This document shows positions 3,321-15,753 of a DNA stretch of 64,000 bases, piece by piece. The notes below the pieces were generated by a model that did not search any database, was not told the DNA's origin, and saw nothing but the letters and a program-made list of their open reading frames with translations. The stretch lies in the sequence record NC_071039.1; one strand, given 5' to 3'. Positions within the stretch are counted from its first letter, which is position 1. The number at the start of each line of letters is the position of its first letter. The translations under genes were made by a program, and so were the position numbers.

Positions 3321-4817
3321 ATGTTTAATATTAATGACATTCTGCGTCTAGCAGGAGTTCAGGCAGTTAAAGAATCAGAAATATGCGATGATAAAGACTG
3401 CACTGATGCCGAATGCCCTGTGCATGGCAAAGACAAAGTAGAAGAAACTGCATCTGCAGGCGCATCATCGGCAGGAGGAATAGCTTCTGTTGCAAAACCA
3501 TTTACTGAAGATGACGACGATAATTATGATTGGTTGGCAGCCCAACAACGTCGTTCTCGTCAATATCGCCCAGGCGAATTTGAATTTGATGAGGTCAGTA
3601 AATTAGATGAAGAAAAGGATGAAGATGGAAATAGAATTTTCCACACATTTAAATCTTGGGTCCGCGCATGTAAAGCATTAAAACCCGGTGTTAGATTTGA
3701 GGGTGACGAAGACATATGCCAGGCGTTCGGCTGCGGGGAATGGGACGGAGAAACCGGATATATTTCTAAAGATGCACCGTATCCTACTAAATGGGATAAT
3801 TCAGTTAATGAAGATTCAGCGTTTGATGAATTAGCAGGAACTGCAGATGATTATTCTGATGATATTTCGTTTGACATAGATGATGTTACACATTACAGAA
3901 ATAACTTTGAAGTAACTGATGTCGATGATATGATACAAGATATACTTGCATATAGTGATATATATAAGGATCAGGCAAAACTAGAAACTTTACCATATGC
4001 AGTTATAAAGCGAATTCACGATAAAGTTATGGGTGAAACATTTGAATCTACTTTAGATGAAATATCTAAATTGGCTGGAATATCTAATGTAGAAGAAAGT
4101 GTGCATGATATGGATATTCCTAAGACTGGATATGCATTTAATGATCCTAAAAAAGACCCCACATTAGATGATGATTACAAAGCTGTTTCTTTAGAAGAAT
4201 TAGAGAATGCATATAGAATTCTTAAAAACGCAGGTCTTAATGTATCTGCAGAAGAAATAAAAACAGTAATAGATAGAAGAAAAAATGTGTCAGAAGCATC
4301 GCCCAATTTAGATAAAGCAGCTAGTGATTATACTTTAAAAAATTTCGGTGACTTCGATAACGATGACGAAGACGATGAAGACGACGAAGACCTAAATGAT
4401 TTAGAAAATTCGGAAGATTTTGAAGATATACCTGTAGATTTCGATATAGATCTTGGACCCGGAACAGTCGGAAGCGAAGTTGCTAATTCGGTAGATGATA
4501 TTGCAGAAATTATAGCAGATATATTGATGACTAGTAACAAATATAATAGCGAGCAAGAATTAGTCAATATGCCAGTTCAGAGACTCCGTGCTATACATAA
4601 ATCATTAATGGACGAAGGCGCAGTCACTTCAATAAATACTAATACAGTAGATGCTAACGACTATTTCCCTAACGGATATGATGGAAATGTAGTAGGCGCT
4701 GCAGGACCGTCTAGTGCAAAATCTGGCGATAATGCTTTACAAAAAGCATTTGCATCTGAGAGTATAGATGATATAAGAGCGTCGTTGCATGAAGCCCTTA
4801 ATAAATTTAAAGGTTAA
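3321..4817 (+). CDS. Highly acidic internal-head/scaffold-like protein
   Basis: 498 aa, D/E-rich, SD GGAG, two LAG motifs, internal repeat, followed by a terminator. Confidence 0.55.
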   Translation: MFNINDILRLAGVQAVKESEICDDKDCTDAECPVHGKDKVEETASAGASSAGGIASVAKPFTEDDDDNYDWLAAQQRRSRQYRPGEFEFDEVSKLDEEKDEDGNRIFHTFKSWVRACKALKPGVRFEGDEDICQAFGCGEWDGETGYISKDAPYPTKWDNSVNEDSAFDELAGTADDYSDDISFDIDDVTHYRNNFEVTDVDDMIQDILAYSDIYKDQAKLETLPYAVIKRIHDKVMGETFESTLDEISKLAGISNVEESVHDMDIPKTGYAFNDPKKDPTLDDDYKAVSLEELENAYRILKNAGLNVSAEEIKTVIDRRKNVSEASPNLDKAASDYTLKNFGDFDNDDEDDEDDEDLNDLENSEDFEDIPVDFDIDLGPGTVGSEVANSVDDIAEIIADILMTSNKYNSEQELVNMPVQRLRAIHKSLMDEGAVTSINTNTVDANDYFPNGYDGNVVGAAGPSSAKSGDNALQKAFASESIDDIRASLHEALNKFKG

Positions 4818-4830
4818 TATTATGTTAAGG

Positions 4831-4864
4831 AAATAAAAGGGTGTTATGCACCCTTTTATTTTTT
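4831..4864 (+). terminator. Intrinsic terminator just upstream of terL
   Basis: AAATAAAAGGGTG-ttatg-CACCCTTTTATTT plus T run. Confidence 0.75.
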
Positions 4865-4872
4865 ATTTAGAT

Positions 4873-6441
4873 ATGGCAGCAGAAGATTATTTAATTAAAA
4901 AGGCTTTTAAAAAGGTCTTATACACAGACAAACAGATAGAAGAATTAAAAAAATGCATGGATCCTATAAATGGTCCTATGTATTTTATGACAAATTTTGT
5001 CTACATTCAGCATCCTACAAAAGGTCGTCTGTTATTTAAACCGTTTCCATACCAAGTAGGTTTATTAGAAGCATTTCACAATTATAGATATTCTATAGCT
5101 ATGCTAGGAAGGCAGCTAGGTAAATCTACTGTAGCTGGATCTTATTTACTATGGTACGCAATGTTCGTACCTGATAGTTTTATTTTAGTTGCATCGAAAA
5201 CAGGCGGCGACGCCAAAGAGATTATGGGTCGAATTCGGTTTGCATATGAAAGTTTGCCAGATCATATTAGGGCAGGTGCAATTACTTATAATAAACATAG
5301 TATAGAATTTGATAACGGATCTAAGATTAAATCAACTACTACTACTGAAAATACAGGTAGGGGAATGTCCATTTCGTTGGTATATTTAGATGAAATGGCA
5401 TTCGTGCCGTACAATGTGGCTATAGAAATGTGGACTTCTCTATCACCTACATTATCCACTGGCGGTAAATGTATAATAACTTCTACGCCTAATACTGATG
5501 AGGATTTGTTTGCCGATATATGGCATAATGCAAACAAATTAACTGACGAATACGGAAATGAACGAAAAATAGGTGCTAATGGATTTAAGCCGTTTAAAGC
5601 TACTTGGAAAGATCATCCTGACAGAGATGAAAATTGGGCAACAATAGAGCGTGAAAAGATAGGGGAAGAAAGATTTCGTAGAGAACACGAAGTGGAGTTT
5701 ATTTCTTTTGAAGAAACTCTTATAAATTCTATAAAATTAAATCAATTAGAATCTAAAACTCCTATAAGAAAAACAGGCCAAGTCCGTTGGTATGAAGAAA
5801 TAAAGCCGACAAATACATATGTTGTTGGATTAGATCCATCTATGGGAGCTGGCGGCGACAATGCTGCAATACAAGTGTTAGAATTACCTACAATGAAACA
5901 AGTAGCTGAGTGGCAGCACAACAGAACACCAGTCGAGGGTCAAGTTAGGTTGTTAAATGAAATACTTACAGAAATACAAAACGCAGGTGTAGTAGAATTA
6001 TATTGGTCGTTGGAATCTAATAATTTAGGAGAAGCTGCATTAGTGGTAATACGTGATACAGGAGAAGAATATTTTCCTGGAACATTTTTGCATGATCCTG
6101 TAAAGCAAGCAGGGGCGAATAGTCGTAAAAGACAAGGTTTTCTTACTACTAATCGGACAAAAATAGAAGCATGTTCTAGATTGAAATCCTTAATAGAAAA
6201 TAATAAAATAAAAATATCATCTTCTGCATTGATTAGTGAATTAAAGAACTATGTACACAGAGGAGCCACGTTTGAAGCTCGACCAGGAACTACAGACGAT
6301 TTGGTGTCTGCACTTATATTAACACTAAGGATGACTCAGTTTATTGCATTATGGGATGATAATACAAATGGTGCAATCAGTGCAAGTATAGAAGTCGTCG
6401 ATGAGGATGACGATAGTATGCCCATGCCTTTCTTATTTTAA
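4873..6441 (+). CDS. terL: Terminase large subunit (T4 gp17-like)
   Basis: Walker A GRQLGKST, Walker B VYLDEMAF, TSTP, nuclease GLDPS..GGD and DDLV; the ORF-track ATG 4846 lies in the terminator loop, so 4873 is preferred. Confidence 0.95.
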   Translation: MAAEDYLIKKAFKKVLYTDKQIEELKKCMDPINGPMYFMTNFVYIQHPTKGRLLFKPFPYQVGLLEAFHNYRYSIAMLGRQLGKSTVAGSYLLWYAMFVPDSFILVASKTGGDAKEIMGRIRFAYESLPDHIRAGAITYNKHSIEFDNGSKIKSTTTTENTGRGMSISLVYLDEMAFVPYNVAIEMWTSLSPTLSTGGKCIITSTPNTDEDLFADIWHNANKLTDEYGNERKIGANGFKPFKATWKDHPDRDENWATIEREKIGEERFRREHEVEFISFEETLINSIKLNQLESKTPIRKTGQVRWYEEIKPTNTYVVGLDPSMGAGGDNAAIQVLELPTMKQVAEWQHNRTPVEGQVRLLNEILTEIQNAGVVELYWSLESNNLGEAALVVIRDTGEEYFPGTFLHDPVKQAGANSRKRQGFLTTNRTKIEACSRLKSLIENNKIKISSSALISELKNYVHRGATFEARPGTTDDLVSALILTLRMTQFIALWDDNTNGAISASIEVVDEDDDSMPMPFLF

Positions 6442-6472
6442 ACTAAATATAGTTAAATTGGATTTAGATTTA

Positions 6473-7921
6473 ATGAAACTATTTGAAGTGTTTACTTTAT
6501 ATGAAGATAAAGCAGAACTGATTGTGAAAAATCAAGGACCCAACCTCCTTGCCGCTGCTAAAAATTATGGATCGAATATTCGTACGGCTGAAGAAATAAT
6601 GAATGTTCTTAAGAGTGCAGATCCCACATCTAATCAGAAATATTTGCAATGGATTACTAATAGATTTATTGCAGGTGAATTTAGATTAGAAGATGTTTAC
6701 AGAATTAAAAGTGAACTTACTAAGTTCGACCGAAATAAACGTTCTTTAGAAAAGAAAGACATAAACCAGTATAAGACTCTCGGTTCGTTATATGACGTAT
6801 TAGATTCGATAGGAAATGATACAACAGAACCAGTGTCTAATAAGCAAGCAAAGAAGCACGAATATAAAGCACAGCGGGACGAATTAATTTCGTCTGGGCA
6901 AGCAGATGTACTTTACAAAGGCCCAGAAGGTATGTTAGTTAATCCTAAGACTGAAGATGCCGCTAAATTCTTTGGAAAAGGAACACGCTGGTGCACCGCT
7001 GCAGACAACGATAATATGTTTGACTACTATAACGGCATGGGTCCGCTATACACTTGGTTAGGATCTGATGGAGTAAAATCCCAATTCCATCTAGAAACAG
7101 ACCAATGGATGGACGAAAGAGATGAACCACTCGATGACGAGGGCATGAAACGATTAATAAGTATCCCTGTTATTAAGAAGATGTACGACGATGGTATTAT
7201 TAAGTCTGAAAATAATATAACCTCCGGTGATTTTGACAGATCATATGACGATAGACTAACAGATGCTGGTTACGATAATTGGAGAGACAAGGAACAAAAA
7301 ATCTCCGATCATATTAGAAAGTATGGAATGTCTGAAAATCTTATCGATAAACTGGTTAGTAAGAATCCTCTCCTTCCATTATTCGTTTTGCCAACATGGA
7401 ACAAATACCCGGCAACGTCTGCCATGGACAACTATTTCCTTAAACTCTCTAAAGGCAAGCAACCGAAAGACTTCGGAGAAGGACAAGGACCGGGATTCTA
7501 TGAGGGAGACGTGCTCAATAGGCTGTGCGAATACATGGAGAGTACAAATTCTTGGAACAATACTATAGATGAAGCCTCATTTAATCTTGTTAGGAGATTA
7601 CTCGATGTCGATCCAAATTCCTATGTCCTTGGTAAGTTTATGGGCGAATCACCCGAAGATGCGAAGATAAAACAATATCTATTGTCTAACCTTCCCTATG
7701 CAGCAAAAACAATCGATGCAGGCGATTGGCCTGATCTGTTAGTGGCAGTGGGCAAGCAAGTACACAATGCTAAAACCCCCGAAGAGAAAAAACAATCTAT
7801 GGAATTAGCAAGAGAGGTTCTAACACATACCGGTAGTTCAGTTGCACACTGGTTTATTAAACTAATGAAAGAAACTGAAGCTGGCAGAGAATTTGAAGCA
7901 TCTCTGAATAAATACAAGTAA
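6473..7921 (+). CDS. Late protein with ADPT..KY..W and G.GT.WCT (PcfJ-like) region
   Basis: Start MKLFEVFTLYED after CTAAATA; motifs ADPTSNQKYLQW and FGKGTRWCTAA. Confidence 0.5.
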   Translation: MKLFEVFTLYEDKAELIVKNQGPNLLAAAKNYGSNIRTAEEIMNVLKSADPTSNQKYLQWITNRFIAGEFRLEDVYRIKSELTKFDRNKRSLEKKDINQYKTLGSLYDVLDSIGNDTTEPVSNKQAKKHEYKAQRDELISSGQADVLYKGPEGMLVNPKTEDAAKFFGKGTRWCTAADNDNMFDYYNGMGPLYTWLGSDGVKSQFHLETDQWMDERDEPLDDEGMKRLISIPVIKKMYDDGIIKSENNITSGDFDRSYDDRLTDAGYDNWRDKEQKISDHIRKYGMSENLIDKLVSKNPLLPLFVLPTWNKYPATSAMDNYFLKLSKGKQPKDFGEGQGPGFYEGDVLNRLCEYMESTNSWNNTIDEASFNLVRRLLDVDPNSYVLGKFMGESPEDAKIKQYLLSNLPYAAKTIDAGDWPDLLVAVGKQVHNAKTPEEKKQSMELAREVLTHTGSSVAHWFIKLMKETEAGREFEASLNKYK

Positions 7922-7939
7922 AATAGCAAGGTAAGAATT

Positions 7940-9430
7940 TTGATTAATTATAACAGAACTGCTAAAAAAATATTTTCTGTATTAAAAGGGCACAGCTATC
8001 GGGTTAAAATGTATGACCTAACAGGCAATGAAGTGATAGACCCAGAAAAAGCTCGTCGATTTTATGTTCAATATCCGAACATGATGATAACACTAGATGA
8101 AGACACTGGTGAAATTCGTATGAGCAAAAACAATAATATTTCTTTAACTGAATACGAAAGTACATTAGTTCAGTTAAAGAACATAGCAGTTCATTACATG
8201 CTAAATTTTACCTTGAAAGACTTCGGGAGAGAAATAACACCGAGAGATTTTGCATACCAAGCAAAAGTTAAAAAGGAAAAAGAAATGTCTAACGGATCTG
8301 TATCTGAATCTATATCTCCTCTAGTTGGTTCTAGAAAAACAAGTTATCAAACAATAGAAAATGTTAAAATACATGTAAAGCATAAGACACATGTCGACGA
8401 AGAGATTAGGGGAGCTCGTTCTAGAAATATTTCTGCAATTTTTATAGAACACTCGGGAGAAAGGTTTCGTTTTCCTCACAATAACTTAGTTGGTGCCCGC
8501 GCCATGGCAAGACATATACAGCAAGGCGGTAATCAATACGATTCGATCGGTTCTTATATAATAGAAAGCTGTGCTAACTATACTAAGTTAAGAGAATTTA
8601 TGAGATATATTCGTTCTAACAATCTTATAACAGAAGATAGCAACGATGTTATTGCTAATATTAAGGAAAGCATAGATAGTATAGCTACAGATTTAAAACG
8701 TCTATCTGGTGTAAATACCTACGGTATAGTAAAATCTAGGATCGAAGAAACGGAAGAAGCAGAATGCGATGTATCTGATGTAGATAAGTTTAAGGATATG
8801 TTTACTATTCGTAAGTTTGATGATAAGTTTACTGATGTTCTTCCTATAGTGAGTAAACTCGTTAAGGAAAAACAATCATATTTAAAGAAAATAGAAGAAG
8901 CAGTTTCTAAACAAATTTATATAGAGTCTATGCCTATTTTAGAAACTAATGCTATAATATATGAAAATCCTAATATTAAGTTAGGACATAGCTTACAAGA
9001 ACTTAGTTCTAGAATATTAGAAAATACATTATTAGCTAATTATATTTCGTCGATGGGATCTAAGCTAATAAAAGAAAATACTTTAAATAAATTCGAATGT
9101 TCTATAATTAAATCATTTTTTGAAAACGTTAGTGTTAAAAAAGCAAATACTAATCAAACTAATGGGTTATTTGCAGAATCGATTAACGAATTTGGGATAA
9201 ATATTCCTGACTTCCCGGATAATAATCCCTTTAGTAAAAATAAAGACAACAAATACAGTAATTCAGATTTAGATAAACACGCATCTGATCAAAAAGTAGA
9301 TGCAAATGACACTGTCTCTAAAATTGATTTTATTATAAGCAATAGTCGCGGAAGGTATAATGACAGAGAAAAATTACTAAAATTACCAGATGATGTTATT
9401 AACAGAATATATTCTAAAATTGCTAAATAA
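7940..9430 (+). CDS. Conserved virion-type protein, unknown function
   Basis: 496-aa ORF, TTG start. Confidence 0.55.
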   Translation: MINYNRTAKKIFSVLKGHSYRVKMYDLTGNEVIDPEKARRFYVQYPNMMITLDEDTGEIRMSKNNNISLTEYESTLVQLKNIAVHYMLNFTLKDFGREITPRDFAYQAKVKKEKEMSNGSVSESISPLVGSRKTSYQTIENVKIHVKHKTHVDEEIRGARSRNISAIFIEHSGERFRFPHNNLVGARAMARHIQQGGNQYDSIGSYIIESCANYTKLREFMRYIRSNNLITEDSNDVIANIKESIDSIATDLKRLSGVNTYGIVKSRIEETEEAECDVSDVDKFKDMFTIRKFDDKFTDVLPIVSKLVKEKQSYLKKIEEAVSKQIYIESMPILETNAIIYENPNIKLGHSLQELSSRILENTLLANYISSMGSKLIKENTLNKFECSIIKSFFENVSVKKANTNQTNGLFAESINEFGINIPDFPDNNPFSKNKDNKYSNSDLDKHASDQKVDANDTVSKIDFIISNSRGRYNDREKLLKLPDDVINRIYSKIAK

Positions 9431-9510: not shown

Positions 9511-9539
9511 TTGACAAATAGATAACTGCATTATATAAT
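9511..9539 (+). promoter_or_regulatory. Consensus sigma70 promoter for SSB gene
   Basis: TTGACA(9511-9516)-17 bp-TATAAT(9534-9539) with an A-rich UP region. Confidence 0.9.
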
Positions 9540-9596: not shown

Positions 9597-9628
9597 GATA
9601 AAATAAAAAATATTAAGGATAATTCATT

Positions 9629-10615
9629 ATGGCTTCTCTTGCTGAACTACGTCAAAAATTAAAAGATCAAGAAACAAAACGTGGCACAAAATCATCTGGC
9701 AGTGCAGATAAAAGTAATTTCCCATTCTGGGACATGAATGAAAACGACAGTGCTACTGTAAGATTTCTTCCTGATGCAAACACTGATAATACCTTTTTCT
9801 GGGTAGAAAAACAACAAATTAAAATTCCATTTAGTGGCATTGTAGGTATGAATAGTAAACCTACAGTTGTTACTGTACCGTGTGTAGAAATGTGGGGGGA
9901 ATCTTGCCCTATTCATCAAGAAATCCGTCCGTGGTTTAAAGATCCTTCGTTAGAGAAATTAGCGCGTACTTATTGGAAGAAACGTTCTTATATTTTCCAA
10001 GGACTTGTTCGTAAGTCGCCTCTGGTAGAACAAGAACTACCAGAGAATCCTATTCGCAAATTTACATTCGGAAGTCAGATTTTTAATCTAGTTAAATCGT
10101 CTCTATTAGACCCCGAAATGGAAAACATTCCCACTGATTATTTAAATGGCACTGATTTCCAGATAACTAAATTAATGAAGGGCCAATATGCTGATTACGC
10201 TACATCTAAATGGGCAAGGAAAGAATCTTCGTTAACTGAAGAAGAATTCCAGGCAATCCAAACATATGGTCTGTATGATTTAAGTAAATTTTTACCTGCT
10301 AAACCTGATGCAGAAGCATTAGCTGCTATATTCGAGATGTTCGAAGAATCGGTAGAAGGTAAAGAATATGATCCGCAGCGTTGGGGGAAATACTATCGCC
10401 CTTACGGGGTTGAAGTTCCTACTAATACTTCCGTAAGTGTACCTGTATCTAAACCAGAACCTAAGACTACAGTATCTAGTTCTTCAGTTATAGAAGATGA
10501 TAACGATGATCTTCCTTGGGAAGATACTACTAAACCTGTAGAGCCTGTCAAATCTGCTTCTAATGCGCAAGATATAATTGCGCTCATCCGCGCCCGCCAA
10601 AACAGCGGCAACTAA
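9629..10615 (+). CDS. Single-stranded DNA-binding protein (T4 gp32-like)
   Basis: VRFLPD..., VPC.EMWGE.CP, YWKKRSY, YADY..SKW motifs; acidic C-terminal tail. Confidence 0.92.
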   Translation: MASLAELRQKLKDQETKRGTKSSGSADKSNFPFWDMNENDSATVRFLPDANTDNTFFWVEKQQIKIPFSGIVGMNSKPTVVTVPCVEMWGESCPIHQEIRPWFKDPSLEKLARTYWKKRSYIFQGLVRKSPLVEQELPENPIRKFTFGSQIFNLVKSSLLDPEMENIPTDYLNGTDFQITKLMKGQYADYATSKWARKESSLTEEEFQAIQTYGLYDLSKFLPAKPDAEALAAIFEMFEESVEGKEYDPQRWGKYYRPYGVEVPTNTSVSVPVSKPEPKTTVSSSSVIEDDNDDLPWEDTTKPVEPVKSASNAQDIIALIRARQNSGN

Positions 10616-10618
10616 ATA

Positions 10619-10648
10619 GGGAGAGGGGATCGCTGATCCCCTCTCTTT
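10619..10648 (+). terminator. Intrinsic terminator
   Basis: GAGAGGGGATC-gct-GATCCCCTCTC-TTT. Confidence 0.8.
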
Positions 10649-10721
10649 AATATAACCTAAAATAGCCAAAAAGTACAACTACAATGTTGGAAGGACGGCA
10701 GTATTATAAAAAGGACATTTT

Positions 10722-10967
10722 ATGACAAAACCATTCGATATTTCTAAATTTAGAAAAGATATTACTAAAAGTATTACAGGCATTAGTACAGGATTTAATG
10801 ACCCAACTATTTGGATTAGTACCGGCAACTATACTCTTAATTATCTCATTAGTAGCGACTTTAATAAAGGCGTACCTATGGGTAAAGTAACTATGTTTGC
10901 CGGCGAGTCGGGTTGTTTGCCTGAAACTGCTAAAGTGAAAATTAGACTATCTAAGAAGCAATCTTAA
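10722..10967 (+). CDS. uvsX: UvsX/RecA N-extein (64 aa) fused to a 17-aa split-intein N fragment
   Basis: RecA-like ISTGN..LN..IS...GVP.GKVT.FAGESG, then intein block A CLPETAKVKIRL from 10914; TAA stop. Confidence 0.9.
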   Translation: MTKPFDISKFRKDITKSITGISTGFNDPTIWISTGNYTLNYLISSDFNKGVPMGKVTMFAGESGCLPETAKVKIRLSKKQS

Positions 10968-10976
10968 CTGTCCAGT

Positions 10977-11016
10977 GTCTCCGTCGAGGATAAATACTTT
11001 TATCTAAAACGGAGAC
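10977..11016 (+). promoter_or_regulatory. SD-sequestering hairpin with internal late promoter
   Basis: GTCTCCGT 10977-10984 / ACGGAGAC 11009-11016 covers GGAG; inner GATAAA/TTTATC stem; ATAAATA at 10990-10996. Confidence 0.8.
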
Positions 11017-11019
11017 TTT

Positions 11020-12453
11020 ATGGGAAATTACAATGTTCTTTCTACAAAAAACTTTAAGAAGCTATGTAATGAGTTAAACATAGTAACGATATCAGAAAAG
11101 TACATTTCTGATATACGTAAGATAGAAGATTCTGCTAAGAGCAAAGTGGATTCTGCATCTCAGCGTATGATATTAACTATGATAACTGTGAAAGTTCCCG
11201 ACTTATATGATGCATATAACAGATACTATCAGCTCAGAACAGATGGTATTAGTACAAAAACTCAAGACAGTATTTCTTATATTTTTGGAAAAGACTTCCT
11301 CGAATCTGTTAATTTACTAATCAGTAATAGATATAAAACTGCATTCCGTAAAGGAATGACAGTGGAAGAGGCATTTATAACACGTAATAAAGACTTTTCC
11401 AATAATGGTGTGTATTATAACCAGATGACTGATAAGCAAAAGAAACGTTTATCATTATTGCTTAGTGTGTATACACCAGAAAGGTTGGAGTTTTATAAAA
11501 AGACAATTTCGTTTTTTATTAAGTTAGATTTGACTAATTATGCAGGAAGAATGAAAAGACTGATGAAACTGGGATCTAGTACGTCTTTATATGCTAGCGT
11601 ATTACGGTATGGTAAATCTGTCGGAAAAAGCACACATTCATCTGTATCTGCGGTAAAGAGAAACTATTTGCCTACTTCGATACAATATTGGATGGCAAAG
11701 GGGTTTGATGAAGATACTGCATTAGTGAAGATAAACGAACATCAACAGAAAGCAAGTGCCATGTCTTCCAAAAAACTAAAAGGCACTAGCGAATACTCTG
11801 TTCGATCAGTTGCATATTGGATTAAAAACGGGTATAGCGAAGAAGAGGCAAAAGGGAAAGTATCTAATATACAGAATACTTGGAAAAATGTATCTCAAGA
11901 AGAGCGTGATCGAAGAATAGAATCGTGGATGACTACAATGAGTCTTAAAACAGACGAGGAGAAATCTTTGATAAACCTTAAAAAAACTCACAGCCCGGAA
12001 GGGATAATGGCAAGGACAAATTGCGATTATGATATTGCATTTAAGCAAAGCGTTGATTTTTTTAAGAAACGAAATAATTCTTCTAAAGTATCTCAAGAAC
12101 TATTTTGGGGAATTGCCGAGGATATCGATACCGATGGAGTTTACTTTTCTGAACTAAACTACGAATACCCTGTTATGGGGAAAATAGTAGATTTCTATGA
12201 TTCTAAAAGCAAAACAGTAATCGAATTTTATGGAAACTTTTGGCATGCAGATAGTACATATACTGATGACACACTGATATATGGAAAAACTGCTAAAGAA
12301 ATAAGAGAATCGGACATTTACAGAGAAACGTTAATTAGATCATCTGATTTGGTTAGTGATTTTATAGTAGTTTGGGAAAAGGACTTTAGGAAGAATCCGA
12401 AAGAAACAATTAAAAATTTAGTTAATATTTTAAATAATAAAAGGAAATTTTAA
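11020..12453 (+). mobile_element. Free-standing homing endonuclease (Vsr-like/EDxHD-type) between split-intein halves
   Basis: C-terminal VDFYD...VIEFYGNFWHAD...IVVWEKDF; repeated YW..KG..E..A modules; position inside recA. Confidence 0.8.
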
Positions 12454-12456
12454 TAA

Positions 12457-13728
12457 ATGGAATACATCGAAAAGGAAGTAACAGTTAGTGAACTGAAGTC
12501 TCTCTACAGTAGTAATGAATACGAAATTGAGTTAGACACACCAGATGGCTGGCAAAAACTGGGATCTTGGTTCGATAAAGGCCCTCTTAGTATGGTGACG
12601 GTAGAAACGCAGGATGGGTTAGTTACTAGATGTGCAGTAAACCATATGATCGAAGTGGTAGACGGATCGGAAACTTTTTGGACACTTGCAAAAGACTTGT
12701 ACGAAGGCCAACAAGTGCTTACTGTAAACGGTGTCTCAACAATTAGTTCTGTAACTGAAAGTGGCATCGAAGAATGTTTCGATTTCGAAATACTCCACGA
12801 AAATCATCGTTACTATGGTGATGGATTCTCTTCTCACAATAGTGGCAAATCGTATATAGTATCAGGAAACATTGTAAAAGATGCACAAGAAAAGGGAATT
12901 TTTGTTGTATTACTTGATTCAGAAAATGCACTCGACGAATCTTGGTTACATGCACTAGGTGTGGACACCGGACCGGAAAAAATGTTACGCATCTCTGTAT
13001 CGATGATAGATGATGTAGCAAAAATTATTAGTGATTTTGTTAAAGATTACAAGACTAATTATGCCGAACTACCTAACAATGATCGACCAAAGGTGCTTTT
13101 TGTTATTGACTCGCTCGGAATGTTATTGACACCAACGGAAACTGCACAATTTCAAAATGGTGATATGAAAGGAGATATGGGCAGGAAAGCAAAACAATTA
13201 AAAGCATTGATTTCTAACTGTACAAATATGTTCGGCAACTTAGACATAGGCCTTGTTTGTACTAACCATACATATGCATCTCAAGATTTATTTCAGCCTG
13301 ACGCTGTAATTTCGGGTGGCAGCGGCGCAGTCTATGCCGCGTCAATTGTAGTGGCAATGCAAAAGTTAAAGTTAAAAGAAGACGAAGCAGGTAATAAAAT
13401 TTCTGAAGTAGCTGGTATTCGTGCAGTATGCAAAGTTGTAAAATCTCGATATGCAAAGCCGTTTGAGACAGTAAAAGTAAATATTCCATATGATACAGGT
13501 ATGAGTCCAATATCAGGTCTATTTGACTTGTTTGAAAAAACAGGTAAACTTGTAAAACAAGGCAATAGATATAAGTACATAACCAAAGATGGTACCGAAA
13601 TGCTGTATTATAGGAAAGAATGGAATGATTACGATAAACTAAAAGTAATTATGAATGAATTTACAGACGAAGACCTAGGCAATGTCGTAGAAGTGGAAGA
13701 GGGTCATTTAGAAGAGTTCGATGAATAA
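12457..13728 (+). CDS. uvsX: 128-aa split-intein C fragment fused to UvsX/RecA C-extein (295 aa)
   Basis: Block B-like CAVNH, block F CFDFEI, terminal HN|S (Asn 12838-12840), then SGKS, DSENA, VIDSLG, NHTY, SGG RecA motifs. Confidence 0.92.
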   Translation: MEYIEKEVTVSELKSLYSSNEYEIELDTPDGWQKLGSWFDKGPLSMVTVETQDGLVTRCAVNHMIEVVDGSETFWTLAKDLYEGQQVLTVNGVSTISSVTESGIEECFDFEILHENHRYYGDGFSSHNSGKSYIVSGNIVKDAQEKGIFVVLLDSENALDESWLHALGVDTGPEKMLRISVSMIDDVAKIISDFVKDYKTNYAELPNNDRPKVLFVIDSLGMLLTPTETAQFQNGDMKGDMGRKAKQLKALISNCTNMFGNLDIGLVCTNHTYASQDLFQPDAVISGGSGAVYAASIVVAMQKLKLKEDEAGNKISEVAGIRAVCKVVKSRYAKPFETVKVNIPYDTGMSPISGLFDLFEKTGKLVKQGNRYKYITKDGTEMLYYRKEWNDYDKLKVIMNEFTDEDLGNVVEVEEGHLEEFDE

Positions 13729-15556
13729 ATTATGCGAAACAGATCGTATTAATATTATCAAATTACACTTCGATGATTTAAAATCTGTATCTGAATTAAA
13801 GCAAATATACGGAGTCTCTTATGATGTCATTAAAACCATCATAAGAGATGAAACGAATCGTCTACCGTTACAAGAAACTGATATAAAAATTTTGAAATTT
13901 AAAAAACTTGTTTCAAAGGAGTTGTTATTTGAATTACATGTAATTAAAAAACAATCATTTAATGAAATAAGAAAGACTTATAAGATTAATGAACTTCATT
14001 TAAAACAAGTGTTTAATGATTACGGAATACCAATTGAAAAGTGTTTATATACTGCTACTAACAAGAAGCGTAAAACAAAAAAGCCTGAAGATTTTACTAA
14101 AGACTTTTTCGAACACTTAGTATATAACGAAAGACGAACAATTAGTTGGATAAAAAATAATTATAACTTTAATTATGAAGAACTAAAACATCATTTAACA
14201 CATTTAAAAATCGATTATACTAATTCGTTGCCACCTGCTGTAAAACATCAACAAGATAAAATATCTAGAGAAACCCTAGCAGAAGAATTAAAAATTAAAT
14301 CTATTGTTGATATAATAAATGAATACGGAATTTCGAGAACTTATGTAGAAAGCGTTATAAAAGAATACAATATACAGTATTTTACAAAACCGAAACATTC
14401 TATATTAAGTGGTAAAGAATCAGAAATTTATCGGATGTATTATGATGAATGTATGACTACATACCAAATAGCAGAAAAATTGGGAGTATGTCAATACACC
14501 ATATGGAAAATAATGGCAGATAACGGATGGAAAACACGAGAACCGATTAAAAAAATTGATTTGATTTGGAATGATATAAAAGAAGAAGTTGTTAAATTAA
14601 TAGACAACGGTTATACATTAGCTGCTTTATGTGAAAAATACGAAATAACATCTATTACTGAAAAGTTAATAGAAGAAGGTATAAAATATACAAAGGGAAA
14701 TATTTCTTCTGGTCATGCAGAAATATCTGAATATGTGCGTTCATTGGGATTTAATGTAATCGACAATGATCGTACTATTATATTTCCGCGAGAAATTGAT
14801 ATTTTTATTCCCGAACTTAACATAGGAATAGAATACAACGGATTATATTTTCATAGCACACGAACAGAAGGAAATGTAACAAAGCATAGAGAAAAATATA
14901 GCATATGTAAACAAAAAGGTATTCGTTTAATACAAATTTTTGAAGATGAATTTATTCATAAGAAAGAACTAGTAAAGAGAAAATTAGCACACATTTTAGG
15001 AAAATCTAATAATAAATGCTATGCAAGAAATTGTATAGTTAAAGAAATAACGGTAGCAGATAAACGAAATTTCTTTAAAAAATATCACATACAAGAAGAT
15101 TCTGCATCCTCATATGCATATGGACTATATTATGATAACGAATTAGTTTGTGCTATGTCTTTTCTTAAAAAGAAGAAATGTACAGAATTAGTTAGATATG
15201 CATCTTCTATGCACGTGATAGGCGGATTTTCTAAGTTGTTGAAATATTGTATTAATAATAACAAAATAGATGTTATAAACACATATGCTGATCTCAGATG
15301 GTCGAATCCGACAAATAATGTATATGTAAACAATGGGTTTGATATACTGTATGAGACTGATTTTAATTACACTTATGTGAGTAAAGAGGATTTTTCAAAA
15401 AGGCTTAATAGGCAAAAATTTATGAAACACAAGTTGAAAAACATTTTATCAGATTTCGATAAATCATTAACAGAAGAAGAGAATATGAAAAATAATGGAT
15501 TTTATCGAGTATACGATGCTGGCCATTTAAAATTGCAATATAAGGTTAATAAATGA
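13721..15556 (+). mobile_element. Free-standing Hef-like homing endonuclease with multiple HTH modules
   Basis: HTH-like repeats (MTTYQIAEKLGVCQYTI); EIDIFIPELNIGIEYNGLYFHS nuclease; C-terminal ELVRYAS...GGFSKLL...YADLRWS...YDAG. Confidence 0.7.
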
Positions 15557-15753
15557 TTACAGATGTTGAAGCAATAAATGAAATTTGGGCTGCCGTGCGA
15601 CCATATATTAAGTCATCTGAGCGCATTCATGCAGCGGATGCGTTTATAGAAGTTTTAGATGAATACGGAATGCTTGATGTAGATATTCAAATGTTTGAAA
15701 AAGAACTTAAAATAGCAGCAAAAACACATTTAGGTGAAGCAGATGACGACTAA
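15553..15753 (+). CDS. Small hypothetical protein
   Basis: 66 aa, coupled to neighbours. Confidence 0.55.
   Translation: MITDVEAINEIWAAVRPYIKSSERIHAADAFIEVLDEYGMLDVDIQMFEKELKIAAKTHLGEADDD

Follow-up and report, generated by a model that had tools for sequence, protein, structure and literature searches.

We analysed a 64,000-nucleotide (nt) stretch of sequence record NC_071039.1, referred to here as the window, from the Pseudomonas jumbo phage PA5oct (vB_PaeM_PA5oct; genus Wroclawvirus; genome 286,783 bp). Its uvsX recombinase gene is divided into two genes that carry the halves of a VidaL-family split intein. We put the probability that uvsX of PA5oct is a fractured gene whose two products trans-splice into UvsX at roughly 0.85. 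Positions 9600-15600 of the window are 100% identical to NC_071039 133600-139600; identity to nine other Wroclawvirus isolates is 99.2-99.6%, and all 11 Wroclawvirus records show the split-uvsX layout, with an identity of at least 99.2%. This instance is unreported in the open literature that we searched; the kind of element is well known.

Anatomy of the split uvsX locus

On the + strand the locus consists of gene 1, a 52-nt spacer, an open reading frame (ORF) of 477 amino acids (aa), 3 bases and gene 2. The 1.49 kb separating genes 1 and 2 is thus occupied by the hairpin-bearing spacer and the 477-aa ORF. The first-pass annotation had placed an atypically split intein within the P-loop of the UvsX/RecA recombinase of a jumbo phage. 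Its reading of the two split genes stands: gene 1 encodes 64 UvsX residues ending FAGESG, a 17-aa N-terminal intein piece (IntN) and a stop codon, and gene 2 encodes a 128-aa C-terminal intein body (IntC) ending HN, then SGKS and the rest of RecA. It had overlooked the intervening gene for a 477-aa putative Vsr-like endonuclease, and hence the fractured-gene architecture. RefSeq labels gp276 (gene 1) and gp275 (the 477-aa ORF) as hypothetical and gp274 (gene 2) as a UvsX-like recombinase; some other GenBank records name both halves UvsX-like or RecA-like, the intein going unmentioned. The locus has the following features:

10722-10967, + strand: gene 1 (gp276), 81 aa; stop codon TAA at 10965-10967
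10722-10913, + strand: UvsX N-extein, 64 aa, ending FAGESG (first half of Walker A); match to phrog_97, UvsX-like recombinase, E 3.3e-13
10914-10967 including the stop codon, + strand: IntN, 17 aa (gene 1 residues 65-81), CLPETAKVKIRLSKKQS; conserved family tail
10971-11024, + strand: RNA hairpin in the 52-nt spacer; minimum free energy -22.8 kcal/mol, z -4.1, 0 of 200 shuffles as stable
11020-12453, + strand: 477-aa ORF (gp275), putative homing endonuclease; Vsr-like C-terminal domain, family homologues
12457-13728, + strand: gene 2 (gp274), 423 aa, beginning MEYIEKEVTV
12457-12840, + strand: IntC, 128 aa, MEYIEKEVTV...GDGFSSHN; match to PDB 6vgv_A (VidaL)
12841-13728, + strand: UvsX C-extein, 295 aa from Ser+1, SGKSYIVSGN... 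(second half of Walker A); Pfam RecA E 2.2e-10, phrog_97 E 1.7e-46
10902-12945: low-diversity zone, 2,044 nt; one variable site (11924) among eight Wroclawvirus genomes

The intein is most readily recognised from gene 2, whose residues 1-131 match PDB 6vgv/6vgw, 'VidaL', at E 4.4e-37, far above every other entry; the next-best inteins in PDB (DnaX, DnaE) reach only E 3e-3 and worse. The annotated features are far beyond chance. A resemblance to VidaL had been proposed in the first-pass annotation, and alignment bears it out: 63 of 120 IntC residues (53%) are identical to the 6vgv construct, as are 9 of 15 IntN residues aligned to 6vgv residues 4-18, and the ESG and SGK flanks are shared. The IntN half needed a different search. 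The 28-aa tail of gene 1 gave no phmmer match in PDB and, because the 17-aa tail is too short for a single-sequence search, we built a profile from 27 homologous tails. This profile matched a single PDB chain, 6vgv_A (VidaL), at residues 1-18, ESGALPKEAVVQIRLTKK, with E 1.4e-3.

The residues used by class-1 inteins are in place in both halves. In gene 1 the junction reads ...KVTMFAGESG, then CLPETAKVKIRLSKKQS, then TAA, which makes Cys65 of gene 1 (TGT, 10914-10916) Cys1 of the intein; this cysteine is invariant in the 27 aligned tails, and the crystal construct has Ala at that position. In IntC, the block B motif VNHM aligns to FNHM of VidaL, H127 and N128 are terminal, and S129 is the +1 residue. 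The two halves are of opposite charge, with a net +4 for IntN and -17 for IntC (-7 over its first 40 residues). The same polarity runs through the family, in which IntN averages +3.6 (n=59) and the first 40 aa of IntC average -4.8 (n=62).

The host portions on either side belong to one recombinase. The N-extein is collinear with phage UvsX 9gbg over residues 26-63, and the C-extein resumes at 9gbg residue 65; in PDB the latter also matches the recombinase 7z3m (E 2e-25), 9gbg itself (E 6.9e-22) and T4 UvsX 3io5 (E 7.6e-21). Intein-free homologues read FAGESG(S/A)GKS(Y/F)IxSGNxV across the junction. Given this collinearity with 9gbg and the intein-free homologues, excision would restore Walker A exactly, with nothing lost or duplicated. 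The joined exteins amount to 64 + 295 = 359 aa with a calculated mass of 39.8 kDa, as had been predicted (359 aa, about 39 kDa), and the predicted tryptic junction peptide of spliced UvsX is VTMFAGESGSGK. The Walker A motif (GxxxxGK[ST]), here GESGSGKS, would be complete only once the halves are joined, and each UvsX half would be inactive alone. Among six Wroclawvirus genomes all variable codons of the two genes are synonymous (11 in gene 1, 18 in gene 2; 0 nonsynonymous in either), and no frameshifts or internal stops were found in the six. The gp274 protein was detected by electrospray ionisation tandem mass spectrometry (record note; PMC7318152).

These features suggest the following course of events. 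A VidaL-family mini-intein lies in the Walker A loop, where it separates Gly64 from Ser65 (GESG/SGKS; the slash marks the insertion site), and would have been broken after its second beta-strand, at the S1 site, by a free-standing Vsr-like homing endonuclease gene. Three proteins would then be made separately: gp276 (N-extein and 17-aa IntN), gp275 (endonuclease) and gp274 (128-aa IntC and C-extein). The basic IntN would bind the acidic IntC and complete the Hedgehog/intein (HINT) fold, upon which Cys1, the block B His, the terminal His-Asn and Ser+1 would perform class-1 protein trans-splicing. From precursors of 8.9 and 47.3 kDa, the predicted products are an intact 359-aa, 39.8-kDa UvsX with the Walker A sequence GESGSGKS and two freed intein pieces, with IntC at 14.5 kDa. 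Recombination-dependent replication and repair would then involve this UvsX together with the neighbouring gp32-like single-strand DNA-binding protein (SSB) and the UvsY- and UvsW-like proteins.

The intervening putative endonuclease gene and the diversity of the cassette

The ORF between the two halves ends in TAA TAA directly before the ATG of gene 2. Its product, gp275, is helical in its N-terminal region and ends in a probable Vsr-like nuclease domain of the PD-(D/E)xK type (approximately residues 356-477, 12085-12450). The N-terminal region holds two family-conserved tandem helical repeats (11660-11900, approximately residues 215-290) with the consensus YWxxxG(F/Y)xE(D/E)xAxxK(I/V)xxxQ, also written YWxxxG(Y/F)SEEEA, which are probably a DNA-binding module. 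A similar motif occurs in a second endonuclease of 611 aa encoded just downstream of uvsX; a BLASTP comparison of gp275 with this neighbour was not significant.

We found 22 homologues of gp275 besides itself, two of them named 'very short patch repair' endonuclease or protein by their sources. The family shares the motif VDFYD...IEFYGxFWH...D..R...IVWE, in which D391, E402, G405 and H409 are invariant and D432, R435, W452 and E453 nearly so. In Pfam, 8 of 19 family members match MTES_1575 (best E 2.4e-5) and 3 of 19 match DUF559, both of them Vsr-like nuclease families, and a gp275 profile run against PDB sequences reached only E ~1-3, to 3hrl and Vsr. Since Foldseek hits for a model of the whole 477-aa protein were swamped by helical matches, we remodelled the C-terminal domain alone. 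The model of residues 351-477 (pLDDT 96.5) matched E. coli Vsr, 1cw0 with probability 0.91 and 1vsr with probability 0.87, at TM ~0.5, and also the Vsr-fold nucleases PvuRts1I and AbaSI; E-values across the Vsr-fold matches are weak, at 0.1-0.6. We regard gp275 as a probable Vsr-like homing endonuclease, and we lean towards its being active or recently active in that role.

Each of the three genes has its own translation signals. A Shine-Dalgarno sequence AAGGA precedes both gene 1 (10711-10715) and gene 2 (12441-12445), and the endonuclease gene has a GGAG (11011-11014) that is caught up in the spacer hairpin: the 3' arm pairs with this GGAG and with the UG of the endonuclease AUG. The hairpin sequence is identical in the six Wroclawvirus genomes, and two diverged relatives (loci L003 and L005) have hairpins of different sequence at the equivalent place. 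The hairpin is probably a translational brake, and by hiding the ribosome-binding site it would probably keep the endonuclease low.

Through the action of the endonuclease, the entire IntN-endonuclease-IntC cassette is probably copied into uvsX alleles that do not carry it. Homing of this kind predicts a recent, cassette-wide spread with short co-conversion tracts. We compared eight Wroclawvirus genomes from Europe and Asia, in which the background over 30 kb, one hypervariable gene left out, is about 22 variable sites/kb. The low-diversity zone (10902-12945) spans IntN, the spacer, the endonuclease gene and IntC, takes in 12 nt of the upstream and 105 nt of the downstream extein, and contains 1 variable site where about 44 are expected. 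Its two parts, 10901-11924 and 11924-12946, are the longest two invariant runs in the 30 kb. The upstream flank (10766-10901) is unusually polymorphic, with 11 sites in 136 nt, all synonymous; the downstream flank is 12946-13089. The simplest reading of 1 observed against about 44 expected sites is a recent spread of the cassette with short co-conversion tracts, which suggests that the IntN-endonuclease-IntC cassette spread recently through this phage population. That it is actively homing in present-day Pseudomonas aeruginosa jumbo phages, with a recent sweep through Europe and Asia, and that repeated invasions split the contiguous UvsX intein more than once, is a more tentative proposal, one that we would rather doubt than assert. 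The invariant runs that rank third and fourth by length in the 30 kb (14335-14989 and 15220-15639) lie in the gene for the 611-aa endonuclease, which has 8 nonsynonymous changes among six genomes despite these long invariant runs.

Family distribution and rival explanations

The split intein of PA5oct belongs to a family that is found in both split and contiguous forms. A search with the N-fragment returned 150 proteins, of which 120 were retrieved and examined. Fifty-nine of these are short proteins that end in a CLPxxAKVxIRxKxK tail of 15-21 aa (lengths mostly 15-19); the remainder are mostly fragments of uninterrupted UvsX. The first-pass annotation had called so short an IntN rare, which holds among characterised inteins (PMC13014065) but not in metagenomes, where it is common (59 N-fragment clusters). 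The IntC search returned 103 proteins with the same intein, about 63 of which begin with the intein body and are thus of the split form. About 33-37 are full-length UvsX proteins (450-520 aa) with a contiguous intein of 133-158 aa at the same site. In these contiguous relatives ...IRLTKK continues directly into ...ITVxELKxLY, where the split forms break. In a set of 50,697 phage records, the only ones with close relatives are the 11 Wroclawvirus records (split) and Salicola phage SCTP-2 (contiguous).

The fractured layout appears in five distinct related arrangements (L003/L004, L005-L007, L009, L011 and P0005/P0225/P0125). Loci L003-L007, L009 and L011 have an N-fragment, an ORF of 363-472 aa and a C-fragment in succession. 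For P0005/P0225/P0125, on 15,320-bp contigs taken as one and the same from matching size only, at least one gp275 homologue falls between the split UvsX pair. Loci L010 and L012 have about 360 nt and no endonuclease gene between intact intein halves; the split state thus outlives the endonuclease, which argues that trans-splicing keeps UvsX functional. L010 also has a 75-aa ORF (4287-4514) between the split halves with a CxCGH...RDLNAARNI motif; it resembles the zinc ribbon at the C-terminal end of TnpB/IS605-family proteins and may be left over from a different mobile element. Split and contiguous forms are intermingled in a tree of 100 inteins, and supported branches force at least 2 changes between them. 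VidaL and the PA5oct intein fall in different subclades, the nearest relative of VidaL being P0151 (70%) and that of the PA5oct intein P0121 (64%).

VidaL is a natural Cys-dependent intein split at S1, just after beta-strand 2, with an IntN of 16 aa; at 37 °C its half-time for trans-splicing is about 1 min (PMC13014065). This metagenomic intein (PDB 6vgv/6vgw), which is used in protein semisynthesis and live-cell editing, shares with the PA5oct intein its family, the S1 split, Cys1 and Ser+1. The 6vgv construct begins ESG and ends SGK, and the PA5oct flanks are GESG and SGKS. Judging by these flanks, the native host gene of VidaL is probably UvsX. The two inteins differ at about 47% of residues, in IntN length (17 aa in PA5oct versus 16 aa), by small insertions in the PA5oct IntC and in their separate subclades; unlike VidaL, the PA5oct intein belongs to a mesophilic phage that is in culture, and its full genomic context, including the endonuclease gene, is available.

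The layout itself is that of the fractured genes of Dassa et al. (2009), which lie on one strand, have spacers of 27-51 nt, show a hairpin in 15 of the 16 genes and carry endonucleases of the Vsr-like or GIY-YIG type (PMC2677866). As in those genes, the N-part with IntN, a hairpin spacer, a probably Vsr-like endonuclease gene and IntC with the C-part follow in the same order and on the same strand, and the endonuclease stop abuts the downstream start. The inteins of Dassa et al., the terminase one excepted, break at the canonical endonuclease-insertion site and have a long IntN, whereas that of PA5oct breaks at S1, 17 residues in; a break at the canonical site is a usual feature of fractured genes, not a strict requirement. 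Their host genes do not include UvsX, and their loci are metagenomic fragments rather than a cultured phage. Among other natural split inteins, AceL-TerL, GOS-TerL and PolB16 OarG have N pieces of 15-37 aa (PMC13014065). The two terminase inteins share the short N piece but break after helix 1 (S2) in a terminase host, and PolB16 OarG shares it but is cysteine-less and hosted by PolB. Matches of the PA5oct IntC to terminase inteins are about 31% identical, and we found no sequence-level relation to the TerL or PolB16 inteins. The MIJ3 paper reports a split PolB intein and leaves RecA/UvsX unaddressed; the motifs of that intein were not found in the window. The PA5oct omics paper makes no mention of an intein, UvsX or an endonuclease (PMC7318152).

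The contiguous relatives, among them SCTP-2 gp204 and metagenomic UvsX proteins, have the same site, G[ED]SG/C...HN/SGK, and an intein of the same family at 52% identity; they differ in being single polypeptides that would splice in cis and in having no endonuclease gene. SCTP-2 gp204 (L008 3243-5213, 657 aa, 'hypothetical protein') is a UvsX with two contiguous, unannotated inteins, the VidaL-like one at GDSG/C...HN/SGKS and a second at ISGG/CLVADTD...VVSHN/SGQ.

We weighed trans-splicing against three other accounts of the locus. The intein pieces might merely hold the UvsX fragments together, with no peptide bond formed between them. Split enzymes can indeed work unligated, as discussed by Dassa et al. 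(2009) and as in the intein-less split NrdA of phage Aeh1. A 145-aa intein within the P-loop would, however, probably block ATP binding, and mere association has no need of the splicing residues that are conserved family-wide; we regard such complementation as very improbable. Even less probable, in our estimate, is a dead gene, in which insertion of the endonuclease destroyed uvsX and left intein remnants unable to splice, so that the phage depends on the RecA of its host or on another recombinase. That splicing is deduced from the DNA and that the mass-spectrometry note covers gp274 alone would be compatible with such decay, but all the catalytic positions shared with active VidaL are kept (Cys1, NH of block B, HN and Ser+1), the exteins vary only synonymously among the six genomes (29 synonymous, 0 nonsynonymous) with their reading frames uninterrupted, and the split layout persists in dozens of diverged lineages, two of them endonuclease-free. 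The least probable account joins the halves at the RNA level, through a group I intron carrying the endonuclease ORF, or fuses them by read-through or frameshifting. No Rfam match was found at E <=1 in 10400-14000, and none at the gathering threshold in L003, L005, L010 and L012. The endonuclease ORF and gene 2 are not in the frame of gene 1, and a double stop, TAA TAA, closes the endonuclease ORF; together with the missing Rfam match, these facts exclude intron and read-through models for practical purposes. Moreover, each gene has its own Shine-Dalgarno sequence and ATG, and under RNA joining or fusion both intein halves would be pointless.

Several points weigh against a trans-spliced UvsX carried by a homing cassette. 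For PA5oct, splicing, the spliced product and the junction peptide are predictions from the sequence, and the mass-spectrometry note of the record marks gp274 and leaves gp276 unmarked. The 477-aa protein of PA5oct itself has no Pfam or PHROG family match, and the Foldseek E-values of its domain to Vsr are weak (0.13-0.15). No empty or endonuclease-free site was found in the Wroclawvirus genomes, so no homing target is known, and the low-diversity zone could alternatively be the trace of a sweep through ordinary recombination. Resolution in the intein tree is poor, and for that reason cis-to-split transitions are not countable beyond the minimum of 2. Trans-splicing into UvsX remains our preferred reading.

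Surrounding genes and significance

The genes around the split uvsX make up a recombination module, as judged from the gp32-like SSB upstream and the UvsY-like and UvsW-like genes downstream. In all related loci the split uvsX is likewise preceded by an SSB-like gene of about 340 aa. The neighbouring features in the window are:

9511-9539: perfect sigma-70 consensus promoter, TTGACA-17-TATAAT (12 of 12 matches), upstream of the gp32-like gene
9629-10615, + strand: gp32-like single-strand DNA-binding protein gene; Pfam gp32 E 1.7e-9
10621-10645: terminator-like hairpin, 11 bp, GC-rich, directly 3' of the gp32-like gene
13721-15556, + strand: second free-standing homing-endonuclease gene, 611 aa, 'Hef-like' (GenBank annotation); phrog_3339 homing endonuclease E 1.3e-94

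The promoter and hairpin around the gp32-like gene are consistent with the reported use of host RNA polymerase by PA5oct. The 611-aa endonuclease has helix-turn-helix domains and a weak MTES_1575 nuclease match, and its gene overlaps the final 8 nt of uvsX; locus L010 has a gene for a 641-aa DUF7487 protein in its place. The large terminase gene terL of PA5oct (4846-6441) is intact. Fracture of the large terminase is seen in related metagenomic phages (L003, 1-1513; L005-L007, 1-2421): the L003 pieces comprise a GIY-YIG-like ORF and an intein-bearing Terminase_6C piece, and in L005-L007 Terminase_6N and 6C are separate genes. An ORF of 506 aa at 6401-7921 is hypervariable, with 120 and 405 variable sites/kb in successive kilobases of 6001-8000, as measured among six genomes that are otherwise about 98% identical. 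Its product has no Pfam match; the variation possibly reflects allelic replacement, or a host-interaction protein under diversifying selection.

An immediate consequence is a corrected annotation for gp276 and gp275, both 'hypothetical' in RefSeq. Few natural split inteins have an N piece of a size suited to peptide synthesis, and those that do are highly valued in protein semisynthesis and in the editing of proteins in live cells; in the literature that we surveyed, VidaL is the only fast split intein with a short IntN. The PA5oct intein is a 53%-identical relative of VidaL from a phage that can be grown on a laboratory strain at 37 °C, and its family offers dozens of natural variants, split and contiguous, for engineering and for studying how well inteins tolerate breakage.

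For phage biology, the locus is a textbook fractured gene in a phage that is in culture and open to genetics; most earlier examples of the kind came from fragments of ocean metagenomes. Three processes can thus be tested in culture: trans-splicing in vivo, homing of the cassette and regulation of an essential recombinase by post-translational assembly. If the cassette is actively homing, PA5oct with PAO1 would be the first culturable system for testing the fractured-gene model, and it could also reveal whether assembly of the two separately made halves sets the timing of recombinase activity.

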